Shown: piece after piece, positions 7,470 through 32,944 of the stretch | Layout of the letters: the number at the start of each line of letters is the position of its first letter | How positions within the stretch are numbered: the stretch's first letter is position 1 | NCBI RefSeq assembly: GCF_001194135.2 | Contig: NC_069008.1 | Coordinates: forward strand, 6,679,679-6,712,622 | Direction: 5' to 3' | Length of the DNA stretch: 32,944 nt | Source of the DNA: Octopus bimaculoides | Lineage: Eukaryota | Notes under the pieces: generated by a model | The model's database searches: none | What the model saw: the letters and a program-made list of their open reading frames with translations, nothing else | What the model was told of the DNA's origin: nothing | Translations under genes and position numbers: made by a program

Positions 7470-10222
7470 TGAAGTACCGGCGGGCTGACCTATTATTTCA
7501 CTATGCCTTCTTTTTCACTTCTTCAATTTATAGTTGCATTGAGAAAATTTTGGACTGTGTTTCCTCTGTGTGCTGTCGGATGACTTCTGTTACCAGGATT
7601 TCAACTTCAATATCTATGCTTGGCCAGTTTAGGAAGCTTCGCATCCTTTTGTCGACCACATTTGATCTTTGTCTCGGTGATAAATCTGTCATGTCTCGCA
7701 TTTCTTTATATTTCTTCTAAAGTTACTGGTAGTTTACGCACGATGTTCCACATCACTTTTTTTTATTTCCGCTTCCGCTCTCAGTGCTGCTATTACAGTG
7801 TCATCCAGCAGTGTGTTATCTCTCGGAATTAACCTAGACAGACCATCAGCATATCCCAACTTTTTGAAGTCAGATATTCCATTCTATAATTGTAGTTTAA
7901 TAGAATGGTACCCCACAGCTGCAGTCTGTTTGCCGTAGGTGACGGGATTCCTTTCTTAGATCCGTATATCGTTAGTAGAGGTCTATGGTCCGTTTGCAAC
8001 CAAAAATGTCTGCTGTGAACGAACATTTTCACGCCAAATATAATAACCAATGCCTCTTTTTCAATCTCGCTGTAGCACTTTTCCGCCGGTAATGATGTCC
8101 TTGATGTATTAGCTATAGACTTTCTCTTGCCCTCGTTATCCTTGCGTAGGGGCACGGCCCCTATCCCATACTCGTTAGCATCTGTAGCTAGTATCATCTC
8201 TAACTTTGGGTCTAAATACGTAAGATACAAGTCTGAAGTTATCACAACTCGTTAAATGCTTTCTGGCATTTCTCTGCCCAAACTTATTTAGCTTTTCTTT
8301 TCAGTAATTCATTAAATGGTGACTTTACCTTATGTATATTTGGGAAATATACTTGGTAATAATTTACCAAACCTAGGAATGCCTGTAGCATTGTCATGTT
8401 TGTCGAGAGTGGCATATTCCGTATTGCCGCCGCCCTTGATGGGTCCGGTCTGCATCCACTTTTGTCCATTACTTGACTAGGTATTTTATTTTTTCATCAA
8501 ACATTTGCATTTTCCTCCCGTTTTAGCCCATATTCATTTATTCTCTCGAATATTTTCTTTGTGTTCGACATGTTGCACTCTAGACAGAATGTCATCTAAG
8601 TATGCGATGGCAAAGTCGTAATCACTAAACATCGCATCTATTATTCGTTGGAATATGGCGGGTACCACTTTTGCTCCTTACGGCAGTCGATCGAACTTGT
8701 ACAATCCACTGTGCGTGTTGATTGTTAGCAGATGTGTGCAATCTTCCTCTAACTGAATTTGAAAGTACGCCTTTGAGAGGTCTAACTTCCAGAAAATTTT
8801 CCCTCCATTTAATTTAGCAAATACTTTTCCTGAGCTTGGAAGTGGCTAATTATGTGTGATTAAACAGTCATTTAACCCGGTTGAGAAGTCTTCGCACACT
8901 CTTAGTGTATTATATTTTTTTACTTACCCGCCGGTGCTGTCCAGTCTGCATGGTCAATCTTTTCAATTATATTCAGGCTTTCCAGCCTCTCTAGCTCTTT
9001 TTTGACCTGGTCTACCGCCGCAAACGTTCCCTTTGGGTCTGAAAATAGGTGTTCAATTTTCTTTGATAGCAATCCTTGCTTTTGTTTCTGTGCAACAGCT
9101 TAGAAACTTTCCCAAAAGATTTTTTGGAAAATTTATCATTTTTCGTCTCAGTTATTTCGACTTGTTCAATCGTTTGATTGCTCCGTTTACGTTATTGCAC
9201 AAAACACTTCTGGGTACATCCTACAAGTTAAATTTCTCCACAAATTCGACGCCAAATAAATTCATTAGTTTTCTCAACACATAAACGTTCACTTTTTTGG
9301 TTCGACCTTTGAACATTATATTACAAACGCGTTCACCCATGAAATATAATTTTCTTCCCGTAACACCACGCGCTATTTCGTTTGAACTACAAAACTTTGG
9401 TTTACCCATTTGTTCCCATGTTTTCTTATTTATGATTATGATGCCACTTCTCGGGGTCTAATTGCATTCTGACACTAGTGGTTTCAATCCTCGCGTTCAC
9501 GAATTTTCTGTTTGTTGTAGTCACAAATTTTCCAGCTAACAAACTATTTATTTTCTCTTGTTTGTTCCATTTTCCTATCATTCTAGTTTTGCAGTGCGAT
9601 TTTATATATCCTGTAGACCCATTATGAAAACACTTTGCTTTTTTATGAGGACAGTCTTTTTTCAGGTGCATCCCCTCGCATCCCGATATCTTTTTGGTTT
9701 TCCTGCAACACATTCTTTGTCTTACGACTTTTTTGCATTGGTCTTAGGTGAAAACGCTCCGTTGAATTCTTTCCGTTGCATGCTTTAATTTCAATATCAT
9801 TTCACACACTTCCGACAGTTTCTACAATGTCAAATATTGGCTCATTTCCTGTTTTGCTTGGGTTTTCGTTCAGATTTCTGCTTCCCTTTTATCTTGTGCA
9901 AAGATCGAACACTTGAATGAATCTGGAGTAGGTATATCCAGCCTACACCTCTCACATTCTTTGTTGACTCTGCCTGTGTAAGTAGTGAAGTTTTCATCTT
10001 CGCTCTTTTCTATGTTTAAACATTTCCATCCAATATTAAACAGTTAGCTCTTTTCACTAAACATTTTGCACAAAATGTCAACTGTGTAGATGAAATTTAT
10101 GTCGGACGCATTTTTTAGCATTAGGAAGTTACTCTACTTCCCATGATTTGCTGTCGCTAATTTTCTTAAAACTAGACGCGTTTTCACTTCGTCCGTCCAA
10201 TCCGGACATTCTTTTTCAAAAC
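7470..10222 (-). mobile_element. Decayed Ty3/Gypsy (Mag/K02A2.6-like) gag-pol; no LTR recognised, integrase core missing
   Basis: Gag FEKECPDWTDEVKTRLVLRKL and EDENFTTYTGRVNKECE; knuckle remnant CPHKKAKC; protease remnant MQLD. RT KLDLSKAYFQI...GLYKFDRLP*G...PAIFQR...AIAYLDDIL (~8590-8850). RNase H LATDANEYGIGAV...YSEIEKEAL...LQTDHRPL (7829-8245). Many stops and frameshifts; left boundary approximate. Confidence 0.92.
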
Positions 10223-10974
10223 TTTTCTACTTACCAGTAGAATGTTTGATATGAACTCTGTAGTGACGACTTATTGCAGACGCCATTTTGGAACATTCAT
10301 CTACGCATGCGCATAGGATTAAAGCTTTCGAGAAATCTGNNNNNNNNNNNNNNNNNNNNNNNNNNNNNNNNNNNNNNNNNNNNNNNNNNNNNNNNNNNNN
10401 NNNNNNNNNTCACCATCAGTAGCTAGGCTTCAAACCCATATTGCCTTCGTCAATCTCGGCTGTTGACCAGGCAGGACGTAACTTGGACCAGCTCCTGGGA
10501 GATGGAATACTGATGGCGAGCGATGTCGCGATTCTATGAAAATGCCTTCATAGTTTTGTGTCTAACTAGCAACCCTGCTGCTTTTACAGCAAGGTGTCCT
10601 GGCTACCGATGTCCAGAGATGGAATGTTTATTCGGACAAAATAAATTATTGTTATTTGTCCTCGCTTTTTCCTTCCATGAACTATGTATGGAATTGTGAA
10701 GCACCCAGCAAGTGCTGAATCACATTTTCCTACAAGTCCAAAAGAAAAGTGAAGAAGTGTGAGAAAAGATCATTGATTGATTTGTGGTCGATTAAAAGCC
10801 ATTTCTCGTCCTGTAAAATCCGGAACAAACATTTAGCGATGTGAGGTTGTGATCAAACGAAATATTTAATCCTGAAGGTCATGGAACACTGACCCTTAAA
10901 CATGTATGTTGCCCTGTCTTATCCGTTAACATTCACCTCGACACGAGATAATTACTACGAATCATTATAATTAG
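10223..10974 (-). promoter_or_regulatory. Orphan ZNF 5' cassette (promoter, exon 1, donor GTAAGT at 10234-10229) with no ZNF CDS behind it
   Basis: Reverse complement is highly similar to 31989-32645 (upstream of gene E) and 11666-11937. The sequence switches to Gypsy gag 12 nt into the intron. Confidence 0.75.
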
Positions 10975-11410: not shown

Positions 11411-11665
11411 TTTTAAAGACAGAATAATGTAATCTGTTGGAGACTTGGCTGATATTTCTTCAAGGTCGAAAGATCACGCAGAGGCTCGCTCCAGTATACA
11501 TAATTATTATTGTGCTGTGTGATGCTGGATAAAATTAAAAACGTAAATTAACATAACTGAAGGTTTGTTACATTATGTTGGGGATTTTTAATATATGTCA
11601 CCGGTATCGTTTACAAAAGGGGAAAGAACATCACCGACACCGCCTATTGCAAATGTTGAGCTGAT

Positions 11666-12018
11666 CTAATTATAATGATTCGTAGTAATTATCTCGTGTC
11701 AAGGTAAATGTTAATGTATAAGACAGGGCAACATACATGTTTAAGGGTCAGTGTTTCATGACCTTCAGGATTAAATATTTCGTTTGATCACAACCTCACA
11801 TCGCTAAATGTTTGTTCCGGATTTTACAGGACGAGAAATGGCTTTTAATCGACCACAAATCAATCAATGAAATTTTCTCATACTTCTTCACTTTTCTTTT
11901 GGACTTTATATCAAACATTCTACTGGTGAGTAGAAAATATACATTTGCTCCATACATATAAACAGAGGTCTTTGATATCAGAGACAAGGAACTTTTTAAG
12001 AATTCCTCAAGAATTTCT
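11666..12018 (+). promoter_or_regulatory. 5' cassette of ZNF gene A with predicted 5'UTR intron 11926-12000 (GTGAGT...TTTTTAAG)
   Basis: The tcaaacattctactg|gtgagt donor and an AG exactly 18 nt before the ATG are conserved across paralogs. Confidence 0.7.
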
Positions 12019-13272
12019 ATGGAGAACGTTAATCACTCGGACACTTGTAAGACGACTGTTTTTAAGAATGGAGATGCAGTTAGAATGACAGACAGAGATG
12101 AGAAAGCTGAAGACAAAAGTGTTCCTGAATATCACTGTGAGATTTATAGGAAGACATTCTCTTCAGAAGATGAAGTCTTGTCGCACGAAGAAATACACGG
12201 GAAGGAAAAACGGTTCCGTTGTGAAATATGTTGCAAATGTTTTACCACTAATGGTCATTTAAGGACACATAAAAGATTACACACAGGGGAAAAACCCTTC
12301 CACTGTGAAATATGTGGGAAATATTTTACTCGTAGTAGTAGTTTAAAGCAACATAAAAGAGTACATACAGGAGAAAGACCCTTCCACTGTGAAATATGTG
12401 GGGAATCATTTGGTCGTAGTAGTACATTAACAAGACACAAACTTGTACATACCAGGGAAAAACGTTTCCCTTGTGAAATATGTGGGAAATGTTTTGCCAC
12501 TAATACTATTTTAAAGGTACACAAAAGAATACATACAGGAGAAAAACCCTTCCACTGTGAAATATGTGGGAAACGTTTTACCTCTAATAGTAATTTAAAG
12601 ACACATAAAAGAATACACACAGGAGAAAAACCCTTCCACTGTGAAACATGTGGGAAATCATTTGGTTGTAATAGTGCATTAACTAGTCACAGAATTGTAC
12701 ACACTGGGGAAAAACGTTTCCATTGTGAAACATGTGGGAATTGTTTTACCTCTAATAGGGATTTAAAGAGGCATGAAAGAATACATACAGGAGAAAAACC
12801 CTTCCACTGTGAAATATGTGGGAAATGTTTTACCTCTGATAATAATTTAAAGAGACATAAAAGAATACATACAGGAGAAAGACCCTTCCATTGTGAAATA
12901 TGTGGAGAATCATTTCGTTTTAGTAGCACATTAAGAGCACACAAAACTGTACACACTGGGGAAAGACGTTTCCATTGTGAAATATGTGGGAAACGTTTTA
13001 TCAATAATTCTCATTTAAAGCGGCATACAAGAATACATACAGGTGAAAAACCCTTCAATTGTGAAATATGTGGGGAATCATTTGTTTGCAGTGGTACATT
13101 AAGAAAACATGAAGTTGTACACACTGGGGAAAAACGTTTCAATTGTGAAATATGTGGGAAATGTTTTACCTCTAATAGTAGTTTAAAGGGACATAAAAGA
13201 ATACACACAGGAGAAAAAAACCTTTCCACTGTGAAATATGTGAGAAATCATATAGTTCTAGTATTGCATTAA
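12019..13272 (+). CDS. Tandem C2H2 zinc-finger protein (gene A): 12 canonical fingers plus a degenerate N-terminal finger
   Basis: 417-aa ORF with repeated CxxC-x12-HxxxH and TGEKPF linkers. The C-terminus shifts out of frame at an A7 run (13214-13220). Confidence 0.93.
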   Translation: MENVNHSDTCKTTVFKNGDAVRMTDRDEKAEDKSVPEYHCEIYRKTFSSEDEVLSHEEIHGKEKRFRCEICCKCFTTNGHLRTHKRLHTGEKPFHCEICGKYFTRSSSLKQHKRVHTGERPFHCEICGESFGRSSTLTRHKLVHTREKRFPCEICGKCFATNTILKVHKRIHTGEKPFHCEICGKRFTSNSNLKTHKRIHTGEKPFHCETCGKSFGCNSALTSHRIVHTGEKRFHCETCGNCFTSNRDLKRHERIHTGEKPFHCEICGKCFTSDNNLKRHKRIHTGERPFHCEICGESFRFSSTLRAHKTVHTGERRFHCEICGKRFINNSHLKRHTRIHTGEKPFNCEICGESFVCSGTLRKHEVVHTGEKRFNCEICGKCFTSNSSLKGHKRIHTGEKNLSTVKYVRNHIVLVLH

Positions 13273-13344
13273 GAAAGCACAAAACTGTACACACTGGAAA
13301 AGACGTTTCCAATGTGAAACATATGGGAAATGACAGTGAATAGT

Positions 13345-13742: not shown

Positions 13743-13883
13743 GTGGTTGGTGTTAGGAAGGGCATCCAGCCAGAGAAACCATGCCAAGTCAGACGGGAGT
13801 GTGGTGCTGCTTCCAGCTTACCAACTCTGGACTAACCGTCCAACCCATGCCAGCATGAACGACAGATTCTAAATGATGATGAT
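13743..13883 (+). mobile_element. RTE-tail/SINE copy in the predicted 3'UTR of gene A (sense)
   Basis: gtggttggtgttaggaagggcatccagcc...ccaacccatgccagcatg...(gat)n. Confidence 0.85.
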
Positions 13884-14227: not shown

Positions 14228-14420
14228 TGCTTTCCAAAATTTCATAAATGTTGTAGATGTGTTTGTATTCAAATTCACCAAAATATACATATGTTTGCAT
14301 ATGGGTACATGATCATAGAGNNNNNNNNNNNNNNNNNNNNNNNNNNNNNNNNNNNNNNNNNNNNNNNNNNNNNNNNNNNNNNNNNNNNNNNNNNNNNNNN
14401 NNNNNNNNNNNNNNNNNNNN

Positions 14421-14515
14421 TCTTCAGCTTTCTCATCTCTGTCTGTCATTCTAACTGCATCTCCATTCTTTAAAACAGTCGTCTTACAAGTGTCCGAGTG
14501 ATTAACATTCTCCAT
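14421..14515 (-). CDS. ZNF paralog B, 5' start only (remainder in or lost at the N gap)
   Basis: MENVNHSDTCKTTVLKNGDAVRMTDRDEKAE is nearly identical to gene A. A 99-nt 5'UTR intron is predicted at 14534-14632 (GTGAGT, CTGAC branch, TTTTTAAG). Confidence 0.7.
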
Positions 14516-17929: not shown

Positions 17930-18875
17930 GTAAGTTACGAGGGAAAAGAGTCGGGTCGTATGAAGAGATAAAACAACTTTGCATTTAATAACGACAGAGA
18001 TAATAACGTGTGTGTGTGTATAACTTTAATAAGCTCCATTGCTTTATAGTTTTGTAAGTATTACGTACTTTACTGAATGAAAGAAAGTTAACAGNNNNNN
18101 NNNNATAGTTTTGTAAGTATTACGTACTTTACTGAATGAAAGAAAGTTAACAGATTCCAATTATATTGGAATTTGTTGTGAAAAACATTTTCAGTAAGTC
18201 GAGAGACCAGTTTCCAAAAACTCAAANNNNNNNNNNGTGAAAAACATTTTCAGTAAGTCGAGAGACCAGTTTCCAAAAACTCAAACGATTCCGTTTTGAT
18301 GGGAGCGATAAAAGGTTTTCACAACAAATTCAGATATATGTGGAATTTACACCATTACAAGGATATCTGTGGAAAATTTTTATCTAAAAATACCCATTTT
18401 CCCTCCATTTATTAAGAAAGAAATTCGGTTGGGCACTCTTATGTAGGTATGCCATGTGTTTCTTAAAGGCATAGGGTGAAAGACACGGCATGTGAAGTGC
18501 TAAAAATAGGGGCCAACACACCACCAATTCGTCCAACACCATTCCGTTTTCAGAAAATAAATGCAGTTATCTGCGGAATGGTCAAATTAATTGACGTGAC
18601 ATAAAAAACCTGAAATATTATCGATTTTATTTAGTGTTTTCAGCGGTCAACGTACAATCAAACAATCTTTGCTTCTTATAAGGGTAGACATGAAGTATTC
18701 CTTATTTTTCACAGGACAGAACAAAGTCGATTCCTTAATTAATCTTAAACTTAGCTAATTTACCTTATGTTGCGTTTACAATTTACTTTCATCNNNNNNN
18801 NNNTTAAACTTAGCTAATTTACCTTATGTTGCGTTTACAATTTACTTTCATCCTTGACTAATTGTTTTCATTGAC
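17930..18875 (+). repeat. Non-coding block, direct paralog of 26075-27389 (holds the empty site of the 26239 MITE)
   Basis: Colinear similarity from gagggaaaagagtcgggtcg to gttttcattgact; single CAGATTCC at 18151-18158. Confidence 0.85.
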
Positions 18876-20519: not shown

Positions 20520-21470
20520 GGGAGATTACTCTATGTGAACCCAACAGAGGGACCAGCGATCCCAGTGGACACTGTATGTCGGATAGATATGGCAAAGTTT
20601 GAGATGCTTAAATTATCTAGTAGAGTAGGATACAGTCTAGTCATCCATACAGTTAATCAGGTTATTTAAGAAGGTCTAATCCCCAGTGACTGGTGTCGCA
20701 GCATCATAGTCAGGTGCAGCAAGGATAAAGGAGATGTCTTAGAAGTGATCACAGACATCAAACTGCTGGACCAGGTAATGAAAGTTATGGAGAGAGTTGT
20801 AGCCCAACTAATTAGGAACAGAATAAGACTAGATGAGATGCAGGTCGGCTTTGCTATTTTTATTGCTAGGCAACTGTAAGAGAAGTATGTAGCTTAGGAA
20901 AAGCACACTGTGCTTGGAATTTGTTGATCTGTAGAAAGTCTTCTACAGAGTATATGGCTCTGTGATATGGTGATCTCTGAGGAACCTGGGGACAGATGAA
21001 CAGCTAGTGAAAGCAGTAAAGAGGGGTGCTGTAAGTAAGGTAGAAATTAGCCATGGGTAGTGACAACTTTAGTTTACAAGAAGGTGGTCCACCAAGGCTT
21101 AGTCCTCAGACCCCTCCTATTCACCATTGTCCTCCAAGCCATAACAGAGGAATTTAAGACTGGCTGCACACAGTAACTACTATATGTTGATGGTCTTGCT
21201 CATATGGCAGAAACTGTAACAAAAATTCCAGGTACGGAAGCAAAACCTTGAATCAAATAGCTTTAAAGTAAATTTAGTAAGAAGAAAATGTACAAGAAAC
21301 CACCCACTTCAGGCAAATAGCCTTGCTTCATATGCTGGAAAAGTGTAGGCAGGAATTCCATGTACCCTGCACAAGCTGTGAGCACACAAGAAGTACAATG
21401 GAATTATAGTGGAGTTAACAGAGAAAGTAGTGTTTGTATGTAACATGCACAGGAGCCATGAAGTCTATAG
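20520..21470 (+). mobile_element. Decayed RTE-clade reverse transcriptase fragment
   Basis: EGLIPSDWCRSIIV...IKLLDQVMKVMERVVAQLIR...DEMQVGF; FVDL*KVF; VHQGLVLRPLLFTIVLQAITEEFKTGC..LLYVDGL. Many stops and frameshifts. Confidence 0.85.
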
Positions 21471-21743: not shown

Positions 21744-21950
21744 TCATCATCATCATCGTTTAACGTCCGCTTTCCATGGGTTGGACGATTTGACTGAGGA
21801 CTGGTGAAACCGGATGGCAACACCAGCCTCCAATCTGATTTGGCAGAGTTTCTACAGCTGGATGCCCTTCCTAACGCCAACCACTCAGAGAGTGTAGTGG
21901 GTGCTTTTACGTGTCACCCGCACGAACGCCAGTCAGGTGGTACTGCCACA
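21744..21950 (-). mobile_element. RTE-tail/SINE copy
   Basis: (cat)n cgtttaacgtccgctttccatgggttggacg...ctggatgcccttcctaacgccaaccac. Confidence 0.85.
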
Positions 21951-22414
21951 ATTAAATAAAACAGAAATAATTTGAAATTACAGCCTCAAATGTGTCTCCT
22001 CATGAAATATTGTTCTTCAGGAACTTTTGCAATTAATATAAATAATAACATTTATCATAAATATTTGGAGCTTTTGAATGGAACATGTTGAATATGTTGT
22101 AAATGCCCAGCTTTTACATCAACTTAACCTGCTGTTCCTTGAGAAGCTTTAGAAAGTATATGTAACCTTTTTAGAAACAAACTTTGGAAGCATCGAATAT
22201 GATTGGTATTTTACAGACAAGAAAGTAAATTTCAAAAGCAGTAAAGCTTATAAGATGGAATAAATTTGGCAGCAGGAGGTTATGGAAGTTGAACCTGTAC
22301 CACTCAGGTACTGGCTGGGTATTCTAGGATAATGTACCCATGTGCAAACATATATATATTTTGGTGAATTTCAATACAAACACATGTACAACATTTATGA
22401 AATTTTGAAAAGCA

Positions 22415-22420
22415 TTTATT
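22415..22420 (-). terminator. Putative polyadenylation signal of gene C
   Basis: AATAAA on the minus strand, in a block homologous to 14030-14320 and 28690-29000. Confidence 0.5.
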
Positions 22421-22944
22421 GAAGAGAATAACAAAATGTAGAATAACGAGTGAATCATTGACCAACAAAATATTGAACATATTAAAAATAATCAATCCTT
22501 TATAATATTTGGGGAGTGATAAAAATAATTTACTTTTGTCCTCATACACACATTAGCATCTTTAATCATGTATATATTTCAATAATGTCATTGTCATTAC
22601 TGACAACTTCAGTATGCTAGAAATCCTATAAACTCACAACAGTGAGTCCACCCGAAGACATGTGAGTAGATGTGACAGAAAGAAACTGAAGGAAGTTCAT
22701 TGTGTATGTGTGCCTGTTTCACTTGACATAGCATGGTAGTTGTGAGTGTCACCAGTATACAAGTAGTGTTCTTCATTTCTACTCTTCCATGAAAACATGA
22801 TGAATGATGGGGAAAAAGTGGCATCAGGCCATAGAAAATCTCTCGCACCCATTCTAGCATGGAAAGATGGACATATAAATGCTGATGTAGGTCTGATACC
22901 AGTATTTTTCTTATGATTCACAAAATCATGTCTCTGTCTAAAAC

Positions 22945-24285
22945 CTAACAGTGAACAGATCTTTTATGACACTTCAATTTACTTGAAGATACATAAGATT
23001 TCTCACAAATTTCACACTGGAATGGTTTCTCTCCTGTGTGATAACGTTTGTGCTCAATTAAATGAGAATTCTGGATGAAAGATTTTCCACATATTTCACA
23101 ATGGAATGGTTTCTCTCCTGTGTGTGTTCTTACATGTCTGCTTAAAACTGCTTTAGAGGCAAAACATTTCCCACAAATTTCACAGTGGAAAGGTTTTTCC
23201 CCAGTGTGTATTCTTCTGTGTTTTGTTAATGTACCACTACAACCAAACTGTTTTTCACATATTTCACATTGGAATGGTTTCTCTCCAGTATGTATTCTTT
23301 TGTGTCTTTTTAGGACGTAAATAGTAACAAAATATTTCTCACATATTTCACATTGAAATGCTTTTTCTTCTGTGTGACATCGTTTGTGCTCAAATAGATG
23401 AGAATTCTGACCGAAAGATTTTCCACAAATTTCACAGTGGAAAAGTTTTACTCCAGTATGTATTCTTTCATGTCTCTTTAAGTCACCATTAGTTGGAAAA
23501 CATTTCCCACATATTTGACAAGGGAAAGGTTTTTCCCCTGTGTGTATTCTTTTATGCCTTGATAAGATGCTACAAGAACCAAAAGACTTCTCACATATTT
23601 TGCAATGGAAACGTTTTTCCCCAGTGTGTACACTTTTGTGTGTGGTTAATGCACTACTAGAACCAAATAATTTCCCACATATTTCACATCTAAATGGTTT
23701 TTCTCCAGTGTGAATTCTTATGTGTCTTCTTAGTGAGGTACTGGAAACAAATGATTTCTCACATATTTCACATTGGAATGGTTTTTCTCCCCTGTGTATT
23801 TTCATGTGTATCTTTAAATTTCCATTTGTGAAGTAAGATTTCTCACACATTTTGCACTGGAATGGTCTTTCTCCTGTGTGATAACGTTTGTGAACCACAA
23901 GATAAGCATTATCATGAAATGATTTCCCACATATTTCACAGTGAAAAGCTTTCTCACCAGTGTGTAGCCTGTGGTGTGTTTTTAAATCGTGTTTGTAAAC
24001 AAAAGATTTCCAACATATTTTACACTGGAATGGTTTCTCCCCAGTGTGACTACGTTTGTGAACTACAAGCTGAGATTTACGAAGAAATGATTTCCCACAT
24101 ATTTCACAACGGAACCGTTTTTCCTTCTTGTGTATTTCTTCGTGCGACAAGTCTTCATCCTCTGAAGAGAATGTCTTCTTACAAATCTCACGGCGATATT
24201 CAGGAACATTTTTGTCTTCAGTTTTCTCATCTCCATTCTTACAAACAATTACGTTACAAGTGTCCAAGTGATCAACGTTCTCCAT
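22945..24285 (-). CDS. Tandem C2H2 zinc-finger protein (gene C): 14 fingers (last HX4H) plus a degenerate N-terminal finger
   Basis: Uninterrupted 446-aa ORF with TGEKPF linkers. A 118-nt 5'UTR intron is predicted at 24304-24421, with AG 18 nt before the ATG. Confidence 0.95.
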   Translation of the reverse strand: MENVDHLDTCNVIVCKNGDEKTEDKNVPEYRREICKKTFSSEDEDLSHEEIHKKEKRFRCEICGKSFLRKSQLVVHKRSHTGEKPFQCKICWKSFVYKHDLKTHHRLHTGEKAFHCEICGKSFHDNAYLVVHKRYHTGERPFQCKMCEKSYFTNGNLKIHMKIHRGEKPFQCEICEKSFVSSTSLRRHIRIHTGEKPFRCEICGKLFGSSSALTTHKSVHTGEKRFHCKICEKSFGSCSILSRHKRIHTGEKPFPCQICGKCFPTNGDLKRHERIHTGVKLFHCEICGKSFGQNSHLFEHKRCHTEEKAFQCEICEKYFVTIYVLKRHKRIHTGEKPFQCEICEKQFGCSGTLTKHRRIHTGEKPFHCEICGKCFASKAVLSRHVRTHTGEKPFHCEICGKSFIQNSHLIEHKRYHTGEKPFQCEICEKSYVSSSKLKCHKRSVHC

Positions 24286-26238: not shown

Positions 26239-26805
26239 GGATCTTTTTTAAAACGGGGGCCACATTTTTCATTAACGAAACACTTTGAAACGTGGAACAC
26301 TGGTAGAATGTGTCATATAAAACATCTTTTTCTCTTAGTCTTCTTAAAAAAAAAACGAAATCCATAAATTATTCCATGTTAAAGTTGTCGTATTTCTGTA
26401 ATTTCAACCAATCACTGACGTCCATTCAGCCGATATACATTAAGTGCCGACTACATAAACAAACGATTCTGAAACAATTAACCCTAACCCTAACCCTAAC
26501 TCTAACCCTAAGCCTAACGTTAGGGTTAGGGTTAAAGCAAATTTAAAATGAAAAAAGCAAATAAAACGAAGAATCGTTTGTTTATGTAGTCGGCACTTAA
26601 TGTATATCGGCTGAATGGACGTTAGTGATTGGTTGAAATTATCGAAATAAGACAATTTTTTACATGAAATAAATTCGAATACAAAAATATTTTTCTGTTC
26701 TATAACACAAAATAGATAAGTATACGAAGTTTGAAAGTCTTTCGGTACCAAAAACACTACGTAAAACATTAATGAAAAATGTGCCCCCCGTTTTAAAAAA
26801 GATCC
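26239..26805. mobile_element. 567-bp non-autonomous foldback DNA transposon (37-bp TIRs starting GGATCT, 8-bp TSD CAGATTCC; possibly Merlin-like)
   Basis: TIRs match at 36/37; TSD at 26231-26238 and 26806-26813; empty site at 18151-18158; inner 72-bp arms match at 71/72. The superfamily assignment is inference only. Confidence 0.9.
26478..26535. repeat. (TAACCC)n followed by (TTAGGG)n telomere-type repeats inside the MITE loop
   Basis: ttaaccctaaccctaaccctaactctaaccctaagcctaacgttagggttagggttaa. Confidence 0.9.
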
Positions 26806-27389
26806 CAGATTCCAATTATATTGGAATTTGTTGTGAAAAACGTTTTCGGCAAGTCGAGAGACCAGTCTCAGAAAATTCAAACGATTCCGTTTTCATAATA
26901 GATTCGATATATGTGAAATTTACACCATTACAAGGATATCTGTAGAAAATTTTATTTAAAAATAGCCATTTTCCCTACAGTTGGAAAGAAATTCGATGGG
27001 GCACTTTTGTGTAGGTATGTCATGTGTGTAAAAAGTATAAGGTCAAAATACACAGCAAGCGAAGTGCTAGAAATAGGGGCCAACACACCATCAATTCACC
27101 AACCACCATTTCCTTTTCAGAAAATAGATGCACAGTTATCTGCAGAATGATCAAAGTAATTCATGTGACAGAAAAAAAAAAAAAACCTGAAATATTATCG
27201 ATTTTATTTAGTGTTTTCAGTGGTCAATGTACAATCAAAAAAACTTTGCTATTTATAAGGGTAGAGAAGAAATATTACTTATTTTACAGGACAAAACAAT
27301 GTCGATTCCTTACTTAATTTAAAATTGGCTAATTCAACTTATGTTGCATTACAATTTACTTTCATCCTTGTCTAATTGTTTTCATTGAC

Positions 27390-27785: not shown

Positions 27786-28804
27786 TAAAAGAATAGAGAA
27801 TATGGAGACTGGTACATCCTCAAGTTTTATTTCCTTTTCTTTGACCATGTCATACAGCATATTTCTATGGTTACCATGACCAACACCTAGTACTGCTAAT
27901 ATAGACTCCAGAAAATATTACCATCCAGCAAAGCAAACACAGAACAACAGCATAATTGACAACTCCTTGTAGTTATAGATATTTAATACTAATCCGTGTG
28001 GTTAGNNNNNNNNNNNNNNNNNNNNNNNNNNNNNNNNNNNNNNNNNNNNNNNNNNNNNNNNNNNNNNNNNNNNNNNNNNNNNNNNNNNNNNNNNNNNNNN
28101 NNNNNNNNNNNNNNNNNNNNNNNNNNNNNNNNNNNNNNNNNNNNNNNNNNNNNNNNNNNNNNNNNNNNNNNNNNNNNNNNNNNNNNNNNNNNNNNNNNNN
28201 NNNNNNNNNNNNNNNNNNNNNNNNNNNNNNNNNNNNNNNNNNNNNNNNNNNNNNNNNNNNNNNNNNNNNNNNNNNNNNNNNNNNNNNNNNNNNNNNNNNN
28301 NNNNNNNNNNNNNNNNNNNNNNNNNNNNNNNNNNNNNNNNNNNNNNNNNNNNNNNNNNNNNNNNNNNNNNNNNNNNNNNNNNNNNNNNNNNNNNNNNNNN
28401 NNNNNNNNNNNNNNNNNNNNNNNNNNNNNNNNNNNNNNNNNNNNNNNNNNNNNNNNNNNNNNNNNNNNNNNNNNNNNNNNNNNNNNNNNNNNNNNNNNNN
28501 NNNNNNNNNNNNNNNNNNNNNNNNNNNNNNNNNNNNNNNNNNNNNNNNNNNNNNNNNNNNNNNNNNNNNNNNNNNNNNNNNNNNNNNNNNNNNNNNNNNN
28601 NNNNNNNNNNNNNNNNNNNNNNNNNNNNNNNNNNNNNNNNNNNNNNNNNNNNNNNNNNNNNNNNNNNNNNNNNNNNNGTTGAACCTATACCAATCAGATG
28701 CTGGCTGGGTATTCTAAGATCATGTACCCACGTGCAAACATATGTATATTTTGGTGAATTTCAATACAAACACATGTACAACAATTATGAAATTTTGAAA
28801 ATCA

Positions 28805-28810
28805 TTTATT
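28805..28810 (-). terminator. Putative polyadenylation signal of gene D
   Basis: Orthologous to 14222-14227 and 22415-22420. Confidence 0.5.
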
Positions 28811-29289
28811 GTAGAAAATAACAAAATGTAGAATAACAAGTGAATCATTGACTACAAAATATGGAACATATTAAAAGTAATCAATCCTTTATAATATTTG
28901 GGGAGTGAAAAATATTATTTAGTTTTTGTTTTGTTATTTTGACATTTTCATTTAAATCCTCATACACAAATTAGCATCTATAATTATGTACATATTTCAA
29001 TAATGCCTCTATCTTTATTGATGGCTAGTTATTACACAAACCCACAACAGTAAGTCCACCCAAAGAAATGTAAGATGTGACAGAAAGAAACTGAAGGAAG
29101 CCCATCGCATATGTGTGTCTGTTTGACTTGATATAGCATGGTAGTTGTGTCACCAATATACAAGAAGTGGCCTCCATTAAAATAACAGCAACCAGGAGCA
29201 TCTGTTGTCCATTGGAAATATCTTTCTCCAGTGTGTTTTCCTGGTGCTACTATATCATTTAGAATCTGTTGTCCATGGTGGCATGCGGT

Positions 29290-29390
29290 GCACAGTTTGG
29301 ACTAGGATGGTAAGCTGGAAGCAGCACCACACCCCTGTCTGACTTGGCATGGTTTCTCTGGCTGGATGCCCTTCCTAACACCAACCACTC
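29290..29390 (-). mobile_element. RTE-tail/SINE copy in the gene D 3' region (ortholog of 13743-13883)
   Basis: ggcatggtttctctggctggatgcccttcctaacaccaaccac. Confidence 0.8.
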
Positions 29391-29626
29391 TGGGAGTGTA
29401 ATTAATTGGGAAGAGTGGCTTCTGACCACAGAGATTGATTCAACAAATCCTGTCTGATCCAGTCAAGTGTGAAAATGTGGAAATTAAAATATTGATGAAT
29501 GTCTCTCTTTTGTATTTTCCTCATCATGATTCATGAAATTGTGTCTCAGTCTGAAAAATAACAGTGAACAGATCTATCTCCGGATGGTATTTGTGGATTA
29601 CAAGAAAGGAAGAGAAATTTCTAACA

Positions 29627-29757
29627 TGGCATTAGGAAGGGCATGCAGCCATAGAAACAAGGTCAAAACAGACAACTGGAGCAGCTCTCCGGCTTGCCAG
29701 CTCAAGTCAAACCGTCCAACCCATGCCAGCATGGAAAATATGATGTTGAATATTGAT
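29627..29757 (+). mobile_element. RTE-tail/SINE copy in the gene D 3' region (ortholog of 13345-13485)
   Basis: tggcattaggaagggcatgcagcc...ccaacccatgccagcatggaaaa. Confidence 0.8.
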
Positions 29758-29809
29758 CACAGTCATAAATTGTTCCCCAAAGAAAAGAAAGAAAAGGGTT
29801 TATCATATC

Positions 29810-30770
29810 TTACAGCTAAAAGGTTTCCCTCCAGAATGAATCCTTTTCTCATTCATTGATTCACTACAAGACTCAAAAGATTTTTCGCAGTGGGATGGTA
29901 TTTCCTCCTGTGTGACAACATTTGTGGTCAAGCAGACGACCACTCTGAGTAAAAAGTTTTCCAGTGGAAAGATCATTCTCCAGGATGTACTCTTTCCCAA
30001 GTTCTCAGGGTAATACTACAAAAGAATACCCACATATTTCACATTGGAATGGTTTCTCTCCAGTGACTTCGTTTATGAACTACAACCTCAAATTTATGGA
30101 AAAATGCTTTCCCACATATTTCACAATTACCGTTTTCTTCTAGAGTGTATTTTTTGTGGCGTGCATAACTAGATTGCTGAGGGAATACTTTCCCACATAT
30201 TTCACAGTGGAAGGGTTTTTCTCCTGTATGTATTCTTTTATGTCCCTTTAAAGCACTATTCTGGGTAAAACAATTACCACATATTTCACAGTGGAAGGGT
30301 TTTTCTCCTGTATGTATTCTTTTATGTCGCTTTAAAGCACTATTATGGGTAAAACAATTACCACATATTTCACAGTGGAAGGGTTTTTCTCCTGTATGTA
30401 TTCTTGTATGTCCCTTTAAATCACTATTATAGGTAAAACATTTCCCACATATTTCACAAGGGAAACGTTTTTCTGCAGCGTGTACAGCTTTGTGTCGTGT
30501 TAATGTACTACAAGAACCAAATGATTCCCCACATATTTCACAATGGAAACGTTTTTCCCCGGTGTGTACAGTTTTGTGTCTTGCTAATGTACTACTAAAA
30601 ACAAATGGTTTTCCACATATTTCACAGTGGAAGGGATTTTCTCCTGTATGTATGCCTTTATGTGCCTTTAAATGACTATTAGTGGAAAAACCTTTCCCAC
30701 ATATTTCACAATTGAAACGTTTTTCCACGGTGTGTACAGTTTTGTGTGCTGTTAATTTACCACTACAACT
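29810..30770 (-). pseudogene. ZNF gene D: 5'-truncated finger array (7 intact, 1 degenerate and 1 partial finger) with a frameshifted, decayed tail
   Basis: The ORF 30039-30893 is ZNF-like only from ~30770 downward. A 2-nt deletion in the last HTGEKP linker gives HWRETIPM*, and degenerate fingers continue to ~29810. No leader or ATG homolog is present. Confidence 0.8.
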
Positions 30771-31988
30771 ATAAGCAGAAACGATGTGGGCTTGAAAAAA
30801 CAAATAAATATTTAAATGATTTTTATACATGCGAAAGTTAGAAATAAAGAGGAGGGTGGTCTTGTGATGTGCTAGAAATAACAGCCAAATCATCCTTAAA
30901 TCAAAGTTCTACCGCTGAAAATATTTGAAATTTTTGTTTTAGTACCGAAACGACTCCTTCCATAGTTTTTAGGTGCCAAAAAAGAAAAGAAAAAAAGAGA
31001 AAGAAATTGCGAAAAACCGTCGTGAGGGGCATGGTGGGGATGGTGAAAAAAATAAACTTATATGGTCTTTATTTGAAACTCCGTATTTTCTAAACTCCTG
31101 TCCCCGCCTATTCGGAGAACATTTCATCCACATATTTTTTTACAACCGTAATGCATGCAGTCTGAATGATAATTCTATAAACTTTCATTTAAAAAAAATT
31201 CTTGAACGTTATCAGGGAAAAAATGGGGTGGTGTGAATTTTGTGAAACTGCTCTCCGAGCCCCCTAAGAATAATTCTTTCCCATAAATCCTCATATACTC
31301 TGAATGTACAGCATCTAAGGCAGATTTGTTGAAAATTTCGTGAAAATGTATCGATTTTTCTGGAAGTTATGCGGCGACGGAGGACACAACTGTGGTGAAA
31401 CGAGAAAACCTTCTGTCGATCCCATTGAAGCAGAATCGTCTGAATTTTCCGAAACTTCACTCTCCACTTGCGGAAAATGTCATTCACAACCAATTCCGAT
31501 ACAATCGGAATAAATCAACAGTCTTGTGTCCATTAAAATAACTAAGTCCTATTTAAGTAATACTTGTCATAATATGTAGTAATAAAGCTTATTACAGTTT
31601 CTCTCTCTCTCTGTCACACACACGTTAATATCTCTGTCCTTAAAAAAGCAAAGCTTGCTTGTAGGTTGCCCCACTGAAAACAGTAAATGAAATTCATAAT
31701 AGTTCAGATCTTCCGCATCATTTCAATTAATTCCGATAAGTTTATTTATTTTCCGAGAAACTAATGAGGATGGACGAGTCGGTGGTGTAGTCTCATATTT
31801 CTAGCAGTTCGCGTATTGTGTATTTGATACTATGCTTTTTATACACTCAGGGCATACCTACAAAACAGCGCCCCACCGAATGTGTTTGTTCGTAACTTTA
31901 TGGAAAATGGGTATTTTTAAATAAAACTTTCTACAAATATGCTTCTGNNNNNNNNNNNNNNNNNNNNNNNNNNNNNNNNNNNNNNNNT

Positions 31989-32752
31989 CTAATTATAATG
32001 ATTCGTAGTAATTATCTCGTGTGAAGGTAAATGTTAATGGATAAGACAGGGCAACATACATGTTTAAGGGTCAGTGTTCCATGACCTTCAGGATTAAATA
32101 TTTCGTTTGATCACAACCTCACATCGCTAAATGTTTGTTCCGGATTTTACAGGACGAGAAATGGCTTTTAATCGACCACAAATCAATCAATGAAATTTTC
32201 TCATACTTCTTCGCTTTTCTTTTGAACTAGTAGGAAAATGTGATTCAGCACTTGCAGGGTGCTTCACAATTCCATACATAGTTCATGGAAGGAAAAAGCG
32301 AGGACAAATAACAATAATTTATTTTGTCCGAATAAACATTCCATCTCTGGACATCGGTAGCCAGGACACCTTGCTGTAAAAGCAGCAGGGTTGCTAGTTA
32401 GACATAAAAATACGAAGGCATTTTCAGGCTACGACGTCGTTCGCCATCAGAATTGGCATTCTGCTTGGTCAACTGGCCGGGTTGAAGAGAAGGGAATTGC
32501 AGTGAAGCTGGCTGCTGCTGATGATTTCGCATGCGCATAAGTGTTTTCCATTAGATCTTCAGAAAGCTCTAATCCTATGCGTGGATTATGTTCCAAATTG
32601 GCGTCAGTACAAAGTTCACATCAAACATTCTACTGTTAAGCAGAAAATATAACTTCATTACATTTGCTCCATACATATAAACAGAGGTCTTTGATATCAA
32701 AGACAAGGAACTGACAATTTACCCACTTTTTAAGAATTCCTCAAGAATTTCT
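31989..32752 (+). promoter_or_regulatory. 5' cassette of ZNF gene E (99-nt intron equivalent 32636-32734; donor G changed to T)
   Basis: Homologous to 11666-12018 plus a ~390-bp extra segment; CTGAC at 32711 and AG at 32733-32734. Confidence 0.7.
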
Positions 32753-32944
32753 ATGGAGAACGTTAATCACTCGGACACTTGTAAGACGACTGTTTTTAAG
32801 AATGGAGATGCAGTTAGAATGACAGACAGAGATGAGAAAGCTGAAGACAAAAGTGTTCCTGAATATCACTGTGAGATTTATAGGAAGACATTCTCTTCAG
32901 AAGATGAAGTCTTGTCGCAGAAAGAAATACACGAGAAGGAAAAA
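32753..32944 (+). CDS. ZNF paralog E, 5' part (runs off the window)
   Basis: MENVNHSDTCKTTVFKNGDAVRMTDRDEKAEDKSVPEYHCEIYRKTFSSEDEVLSQKEIHEKEK; 189/192 nt identical to the start of gene A. Confidence 0.85.
   Translation, partial: MENVNHSDTCKTTVFKNGDAVRMTDRDEKAEDKSVPEYHCEIYRKTFSSEDEVLSQKEIHEKEK

Follow-up and report, generated by a model that had tools for sequence, protein, structure and literature searches.

Diversification at DNA-contacting codons in young zinc fingers of a KRAB-less octopus gene cluster, with a probable recent one-finger duplication in a truncated copy

The window analysed here, a stretch of 32,944 nucleotides of Octopus bimaculoides chromosome CM046628.1 (~6.68-6.71 Mb of the chromosome-scale assembly GCA_001194135.2), contains a cluster of poly-zinc-finger genes without KRAB, whose proteins begin with MENV. 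Position 1 of the window corresponds to about 6,679,679 on the chromosome; the 417-aa open reading frame (ORF) of gene A is placed at CM046628.1:6,691,697, and the position of the copy C ORF is consistent with this. The G+C content is ~35%, and 18 runs of N interrupt the 33 kb. A six-frame scan of the window found 33 canonical C-x2-C-x12-H-x3-H fingers, and Tandem Repeats Finder reported three arrays with an 84-bp period. At least five copies or heads of the family (A, B, C, D and E) lie within ~35 kb:

12019-13272, plus strand: gene A, intact, its 417-aa ORF encoding a MENV head, a degenerate finger 0 and then 12 in-frame fingers
14421-14515, minus strand: head fragment of paralogue E, matching gene A at 93/95 nt and abutting an N gap (14321-14420)
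22945-24285, minus strand: gene B, an intact 446-aa family member with 13 fingers, older and more diverged
30039-30893, minus strand: copy C, which carries the finger pair C5/C6
32753-32944, plus strand: head of paralogue D, matching the gene A head at 189/192 nt

The finger arrays of D and E are wholly absent and fall in assembly gaps, that of D in a gap of 1,776 N (32945-34720) just past the window end, as seen when the locus was extended by 10 kb. Because the D and E heads are near-identical to that of gene A while their arrays lie in gaps, some of the very young copies in the cluster are left unresolved by the assembly.

In genes A and B, one exon holds the complete ORF, and a short head is all that precedes the fingers, in keeping with a family plan of a single coding exon that encodes the 'MENV' head and then 12-14 fingers. 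Pfam matched zinc-finger families alone in A, B and C (for copy C, PF00096 and PF13465, E = 1e-38 and 3e-49), and no match at E<=0.01 to KRAB (PF01352), SCAN, BTB, ZAD or SET was found in gene A, gene B or copy C. The initial annotation, made from the letters of the sequence, had described a family with no recognisable KRAB domain, and for these three members that description holds.

An exhaustive HMMER search with the 65-aa gene A head matched 70 proteins, a handful of which have the whole head in common, beginning MENV... and continuing into a first finger of the form 'YRCxxCRKTFSSEHEVFxHxEIH'. Five of the six head-bearing relatives that were looked up are named O. bimaculoides or O. sinensis; with taxonomic spread sampled by these six representatives, the cluster would appear to be an octopus lineage-specific expansion of KRAB-less poly-C2H2 genes. 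A word-index protein search with the gene A head gave no match, and a profile of eight heads matched a single 69-aa Logan fragment, so that the protein index searched with these two queries evidently lacks these octopus ORFs. Look-up by exact name found no annotated protein record for the products of A, B and C and no called-gene record for gene B and two representative proteins. When the copy C array was used as a homologue query, the matches were generic vertebrate and insect zinc-finger proteins (identity <=53%), with no orthologue among them.

In all local copies, the finger that follows the MENV head is degenerate (12130-12213, 24100-24180 and 32860-32944). A and D have a Cys to Tyr change (CEIY), B has a Cys to Arg change (YRREIC), and D has, in addition, His changed to Gln. 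The same finger is a proper C2H2 finger in the more distant relatives P0121, P0123, P0128, P0133 and P0138, and it is degenerate (CEIR) in P0136, another O. bimaculoides protein.

Positions 12204-13078 of gene A have a higher-order period of 252 bp (3.5 copies, 85% matches), seen in the protein as a three-finger R-K-K pattern, in which R and K types are those with linker EKR and EKP, respectively. Thus, the arrays of this family also grow by three-finger blocks. Towards the end of the gene (13217-13307), a run of seven A (GGAGAAAAAAACC, in place of the GGAGAAAAACC of other linkers) displaces the reading frame by 2; the ORF consequently closes at 13272, leaving out of frame a 13th finger (FHCEICEKSYSSSIALRKHKTVHTGKDV, 13224-13307) that is otherwise intact. 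The region upstream of gene A recurs inverted ~700 bp further upstream (10506-10974 and 11665-11905), and both of these copies match the region upstream of paralogue D (31988-32454) at 95-98%, which suggests a palindromic or head-to-head duplicated promoter segment.

The remaining features of the window lie between and around these genes. Two families of dispersed repeats occupy the flanks of the zinc-finger genes, one at 29254-29400, 21775-21896, 1033-1183 and 13753-13857, and the other at 31630-31944, 18359-18691 and 26932-27267; identity between copies is 69-77% in both, and searches of the window, the dispersed repeats included, returned neither a tRNA-derived nor an Rfam element. An ORF fragment on the minus strand (7829-8245) matches a reverse-transcriptase RNase H-like domain (PF17917, E=2e-19) and is a remnant of an LTR retrotransposon. 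At 26479-26534, (TAACCC) x 6.7 directly adjoins (GTTAGG) x 2.7, that is, telomere-type repeats lie head to head at an interstitial site, and a CT-rich low-complexity tract of ~350 bp with CTT/CTC/CCT repeats is present at 1794-2151.

Copy C is a partial paralogue of the intact gene A. Its parts, in the order in which the minus strand is read, are as follows:

30717-30769, minus strand: C0, the C-terminal half of a finger (...SCSGKLTAHKTVHTVEKR); array homology stops inside the finger, which marks the 5' truncation point
30465-30716, minus strand: fingers C3, C2 and C1, all intact C2H2, the first two R-type (EKR) and the last K-type
30381-30464, minus strand: finger C4, FPCEICGKCFTYNSDLKGHTRIHTGEKP, K-type
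30297-30380, minus strand: finger C5, FHCEICGNCFTHNSALKRHKRIHTGEKP, with -1 His, +3 Ala and +6 Arg
30213-30296, minus strand: finger C6, FHCEICGNCFTQNSALKGHKRIHTGEKP, with -1 Gln, +3 Ala and +6 Gly, one half of the putative recent 84-bp duplication
30129-30212, minus strand: finger C7, in frame and degenerate, its second His changed to Tyr (HKKY) and its linker reading LEENG
30039-30128, minus strand: finger C8, ~81% identical to finger 1 of gene B
29800-30038, minus strand: fingers C9-C11, decayed, collinear with A11-A13, with stops, indels and a Cys pair gone
28713-29760, minus strand: 3' flank, paralogous to the gene A 3' flank in inverted orientation

The flank relationship comes from BLAST within the window, in which 29254-29760 matched 13877-13343 at 84% and 28713-29105 matched 14319-13916 at 90%. 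That the host copy is truncated had been noted from the letters alone, and is borne out: copy C breaks off within a finger at its 5' end and is headless, nothing resembling MENV being found upstream. At its other end, a frameshift after the last His of C8 (CAC TGG AGA, compared with CAC ACT GGA GAG AAA CCA) leads to a stop codon at 30039-30041. Being broken at both ends, copy C may be non-functional. Between these ends, ~725 nt (30045-30769, from the truncated C0 to C8) share one frame, C1-C6 and C8 retain all their zinc ligands, and all frameshifts, stops and indels are confined to the ~290 nt beyond the stop, which would imply constraint until recently, repair by gene conversion, or a truncated gene that is still used by way of an unseen 5' exon.

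Fingers C1-C6 have exactly the spacing C-x2-C-x12-H-x3-H, a 28-residue period and a linker of TGEKP type, and are, therefore, classical C2H2 (Krueppel-type) fingers. C3-C6 read R-K-K-K, compared with R-K-K in gene A, and this one extra K unit is as expected from a single-finger duplication. We rejected a one-to-one assignment of copy C fingers to gene A orthologues, as registers are ambiguous owing to the three-finger periodicity.

The observation from which this analysis started is the near-identity of neighbouring units in copy C. The initial annotation reported that 30193-30276 and 30277-30360 differ at only 2 of 84 nt, and this is exact: the differences are C/G at 30245/30329 and C/A at 30261/30345. 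Both are nonsynonymous and at contact positions, as had been stated, with C6 and C5 reading CAG and CAT (Gln/His) at -1 and GGA and CGA (Gly/Arg) at +6. The two fingers are thus 82/84 identical with 0 synonymous differences. The positions -1, +2, +3 and +6 are indeed the canonical base-contacting ones, since C4-C6 align without gaps to fingers of DNA-bound ZNF568, Aart, PRDM9 and Zif268, and the canonical numbering applies to them.

The third unit described beside this pair (30361-30444) is 6 nt from each of the other two in the unit phase first used, including, from C5 to C4, His to Tyr at -1, Ala to Asp at +3 and Arg to Gly at +6. In true finger phase, C4 and C5 differ at 8 nt in 7 codons, of which 6 are nonsynonymous (three at -1, +3 and +6) and 1 is synonymous (Gly); the additional changes are Asn to Lys, Lys to Thr, and His to Pro at residue 2 (two nt). 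The two counts differ because the earlier phase was shifted by 20 nt, so that the His to Pro nucleotides fell into a fourth unit. C4 is 76/84 identical to C5/C6 and 75/84 identical to A4, A5, A7, A8 and A12. Being about as near to five gene A fingers as to C5, it is a member of the subfamily that stands outside the recent duplication. The description of three near-identical units, therefore, stands for two of them (C5 and C6), which are truly recent, and not for the third (C4, ~90%).

Of the 32 fingers compared in the window, no two are more alike than C5 and C6; A5 and A8 come next, at 78/84. Adjacent finger pairs other than C5/C6 share 47-76/84, and adjacent identities within copy C are 53, 70, 56, 76 and 82 of 84.

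How contact codons evolve was examined in 12 K-type fingers (A1, 2, 4, 5, 7, 8, 10 and 12 together with C1, 4, 5 and 6), so that gene A supplies 8/12 of the set. Pairwise, pS is 0.16, which is close to the neutral divergence between the flanks of A and those of C, and pN is 0.53 at -1/+2/+3/+6 and 0.085 elsewhere. Parsimony on a neighbour-joining tree assigns 29 nonsynonymous and 4 synonymous events to the contact codons, and 30 and 10 to the other 24 codons. The four codons with the most nonsynonymous events among all 28 are exactly the four contact codons, and codons +1, +4 and +5, which are interleaved with them, have 0 synonymous events. We fitted a purpose-built fixed-sites maximum-likelihood codon model (GY94 type, F3x4, shared branch lengths), with likelihood-ratio tests against omega = 1, to trees built from 84 nt each; any gene conversion between fingers would violate this model. 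The fits were as follows:

K-type, n=12, two tree variants: contact omega 4.5-4.8, rest 0.38-0.46 (2dlnL 15.7-18.2, P 8e-5 to 2e-5)
K-type without C5/C6: contact omega 4.85, rest 0.47 (P=4e-5)
K-type, gene A alone: contact omega 6.2, rest 0.48 (P=1e-4)
Control partition (-2, +1, +4, +5): omega 0.57, rest 0.71 (not significant)
Helix block with its own rate, r=0.98: contact omega 4.9, rest 0.38 (P=3e-4)
Contact codons with their own rate, ~2.7 synonymous sites as the neutral yardstick, the most conservative variant: contact omega 4.0, rest 0.39 (P=0.07)

Diversifying selection at the contact residues of the K-type subfamily is supported by these fits. The initial annotation had proposed arms-race-like diversification of contact residues, to be looked for by dN/dS across the fingers of the family. 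An excess of nonsynonymous change at the contact codons is present in the K-type fingers (omega ~4.5-6 compared with 0.4-0.5), also without C5/C6 and in gene A alone, but was not seen in the other fingers of the family that were compared. R-type fingers gave a contact omega of 1.27, gene B fingers one of 0.79, and a pair of arrays located 5.3 Mb from here on this chromosome gave 0.68 and 1.99, none of them significant and all from saturated trees. In O. sinensis (CM016886.1), a duplicated finger pair has 11 nt differences, 7 of them synonymous and some at +1, +2 and +3, with identical helix residues, which is purifying selection on the helix and the opposite of C5/C6. That pair belongs to a 168-bp two-finger duplication; separately, a second copy of a terminal finger occurs 813 bp further downstream and has 3 synonymous differences (both features within locus L004, at 20957-21292 and 22133-23029).

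Taken together, we consider it reasonably probable, with real room for doubt, that the fingers of copy C, in an octopus-specific cluster, underwent a one-finger duplication followed by diversifying selection for new binding specificities. Unequal exchange or replication slippage would lengthen the arrays of this family, either between 84-bp units or between 252-bp blocks of three fingers, and the latest such event, a tandem duplication of one 84-bp finger, would have given rise to C5/C6. As C5 and C6 differ by 2.4%, compared with 10-16% between the A and C flanks, this duplication is much younger than the split of A and C. Two point substitutions, both transversions, would then have followed, at -1 (Gln/His) and +6 (Gly/Arg). 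Under the canonical recognition rules, the 5' base of a finger's DNA triplet is read by the residue at +6 and the 3' base by that at -1, and C5 and C6 are, therefore, predicted to prefer different triplets. The same process is visible across the K-type fingers of gene A and copy C, in which the scaffold is conserved while contact codons change several times faster than synonymous sites, a turnover which the codon analysis within the window shows to be diversifying selection, favouring new binding specificities once a finger has been duplicated.

The pair itself rests on two substitutions, and the caution that the sample is tiny was well placed. We calculated the probability that 2/2 changes are nonsynonymous within the four contact codons:

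Uniform neutrality: P = 0.0115
Scaffold omega 0.45, contact sites neutral: P = 0.031
Scaffold fully constrained, contact sites neutral: P = 0.13
Fitted selection model, contact omega 4.5: P = 0.24

The first of these values is nominally significant. The pattern of C5/C6 fits selection best, but the pair alone is weak evidence and not decisive, and it cannot separate positive selection from relaxed constraint. It is perhaps conceivable, then, that the finger was duplicated in a copy C that had already become a pseudogene, with both changes falling on contact codons by chance. A 5' end cut inside a finger, with no MENV head, the lost zinc ligand of C7, the frameshift that ends the ORF after C8, the decay of C9-C11 and a sequence without an annotated protein on record would all suit such a history, as would the fact that there are two events only. 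We nonetheless regard neutral drift as unlikely, given the value of 0.0115 for both changes being nonsynonymous at contact codons under uniform neutrality, the ~725 nt kept in one frame with the ligands of C1-C6 and C8, which speak for constraint or very recent loss, and the same contact-codon bias in the intact gene A. The pair could also be a product of assembly, in which a mis-resolved tandem repeat has set alleles or paralogous reads side by side, or in which the true copy number is another one. This is a short-read assembly with its 18 N runs in 33 kb, it has lost the arrays of the sister copies D and E wholly to gaps, and it places copy C on a contig of only ~3.3 kb (28678-31947); the two units have exact stretches of ~67 nt in common, one unit fewer would restore the canonical R-K-K pattern, and the copy C ORF is recorded in this assembly alone, with no independent contig. 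Against this, the units have no adjoining gap, the reading frame is exact across all three of them, short-read assemblers usually collapse tandem repeats rather than expand them, and variant sites 16 nt apart would normally give one bubble rather than a tandem pair, so that we judge an artefact to be quite improbable.

Gene conversion, which is known in zinc-finger arrays, bears on the subfamily as a whole. If it had homogenised the scaffold, synonymous sites included, and old contact residues had merely been preserved, then an omega >1 would be an artefact of an underestimated neutral distance. The omega test does pool the synonymous sites of the scaffold, and with those of the contact codons themselves P rises to 0.07; moreover, the Gly/Arg alternative at +6 also occurs in neighbouring fingers. 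Conversion tracts would, however, have had to skip single codons, since +1, +4 and +5 are without synonymous change, and C5/C6 would need three separate tracts, for which a duplication and two point changes are the simpler explanation. The fitted rate of the helix block is 0.98 of that of the scaffold, that is, the helix is not older than the scaffold, which argues against old helices on a homogenised scaffold. Concerted evolution of this kind is, in our view, very improbable, and recent duplication with diversifying selection at the contact residues remains the reading that we prefer.

Perhaps, going further than duplication and selection, the MENV-headed KRAB-less subfamily is an independently evolved genome-defence family, in which the head would serve, much as KRAB or the FiNZ head does, as a new effector (repressor-recruiting) module, the arrays would still gain fingers through 84-bp duplication and have them retuned under positive selection against active octopus transposons, and C5/C6 would be a snapshot of the earliest step. 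On balance, we hold this to be doubtful.

KRAB-ZNF genes and PRDM9 are classically recognised by rapid change in the residues with which their tandem fingers read DNA. C5/C6 alone is a two-substitution observation in a probably defunct copy, and would be a small and ordinary example of this known turnover of contact residues. The young K-type subfamily, on the other hand, is a tractable set of fingers for binding assays and a template for a genome-wide test.

Comparison with known systems places the octopus family beside several others. Like the mammalian KRAB zinc-finger genes, or KZNFs (Emerson and Thomas, 2009, as cited in PMC10547256), it consists of clustered, lineage-specific tandem C2H2 arrays that gain and lose fingers by unit duplication, that combine a conserved scaffold with an excess of nonsynonymous change at -1/+2/+3/+6, and that include many truncated or decaying copies. 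Unlike KZNFs, it has no KRAB by Pfam and has instead a MENV head of ~35-50 aa with a degenerate finger, found among octopus relatives; a further hallmark of KZNFs is the binding and silencing of transposons via a co-repressor. The PRDM9 minisatellite is alike in its 84-bp unit and in near-identical neighbours whose only differences, as in C5 and C6, are at -1 and +6. The octopus family differs from PRDM9, however, in having no PR/SET, KRAB or SSXRD domain, and the copy C array, with one unit pair >95% identical and 79% matches over 6.4 units, is not a minisatellite. The pattern is thus a textbook one for KZNFs and PRDM9, yet membership of either fails on the defining domains.

A closer likeness is found in the FiNZ zinc-finger genes of cyprinid fish (Wells et al., 2023, PMC10547256), which are KRAB-less and lineage-specific, have a short family-specific N-terminal sequence, and show positive selection at base-contacting residues in recent paralogues. 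The octopus genes have another head sequence and belong to another phylum, and FiNZ genes differ from them in the knock-down evidence for transposon repression.

Cephalopod genomes contain some of the largest known C2H2 expansions. The nearest system of all is the octopus C2H2 expansion itself (Albertin et al., 2015, as cited in PMC10547256 and PMC12513265), with the same organism and the same clusters of many-finger genes. Wells et al. (2023, PMC10547256) found transposon consensus sequences to be enriched for the motifs predicted from octopus zinc-finger ORFs. A transposon arms race for octopus zinc-finger genes has already been proposed in the literature; in cephalopods, it is called an open question (Holzinger et al., 2025). 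Motif prediction recovered only 5% of human KZNF motifs (PMC10547256), which makes predictions from the recognition code unreliable for single proteins, and the PAML analysis of Wells et al. (2023, PMC10547256) was confined to zebrafish FiNZ genes. Published cephalopod work has offered only high entropy at contact residues, in a species set that includes octopus, together with the predicted motif enrichment in transposons. To these earlier octopus studies, which were without a codon-level test of omega, the present analysis makes a modest addition, namely a codon-level omega >1 in one small and young octopus finger subfamily of 12 fingers.
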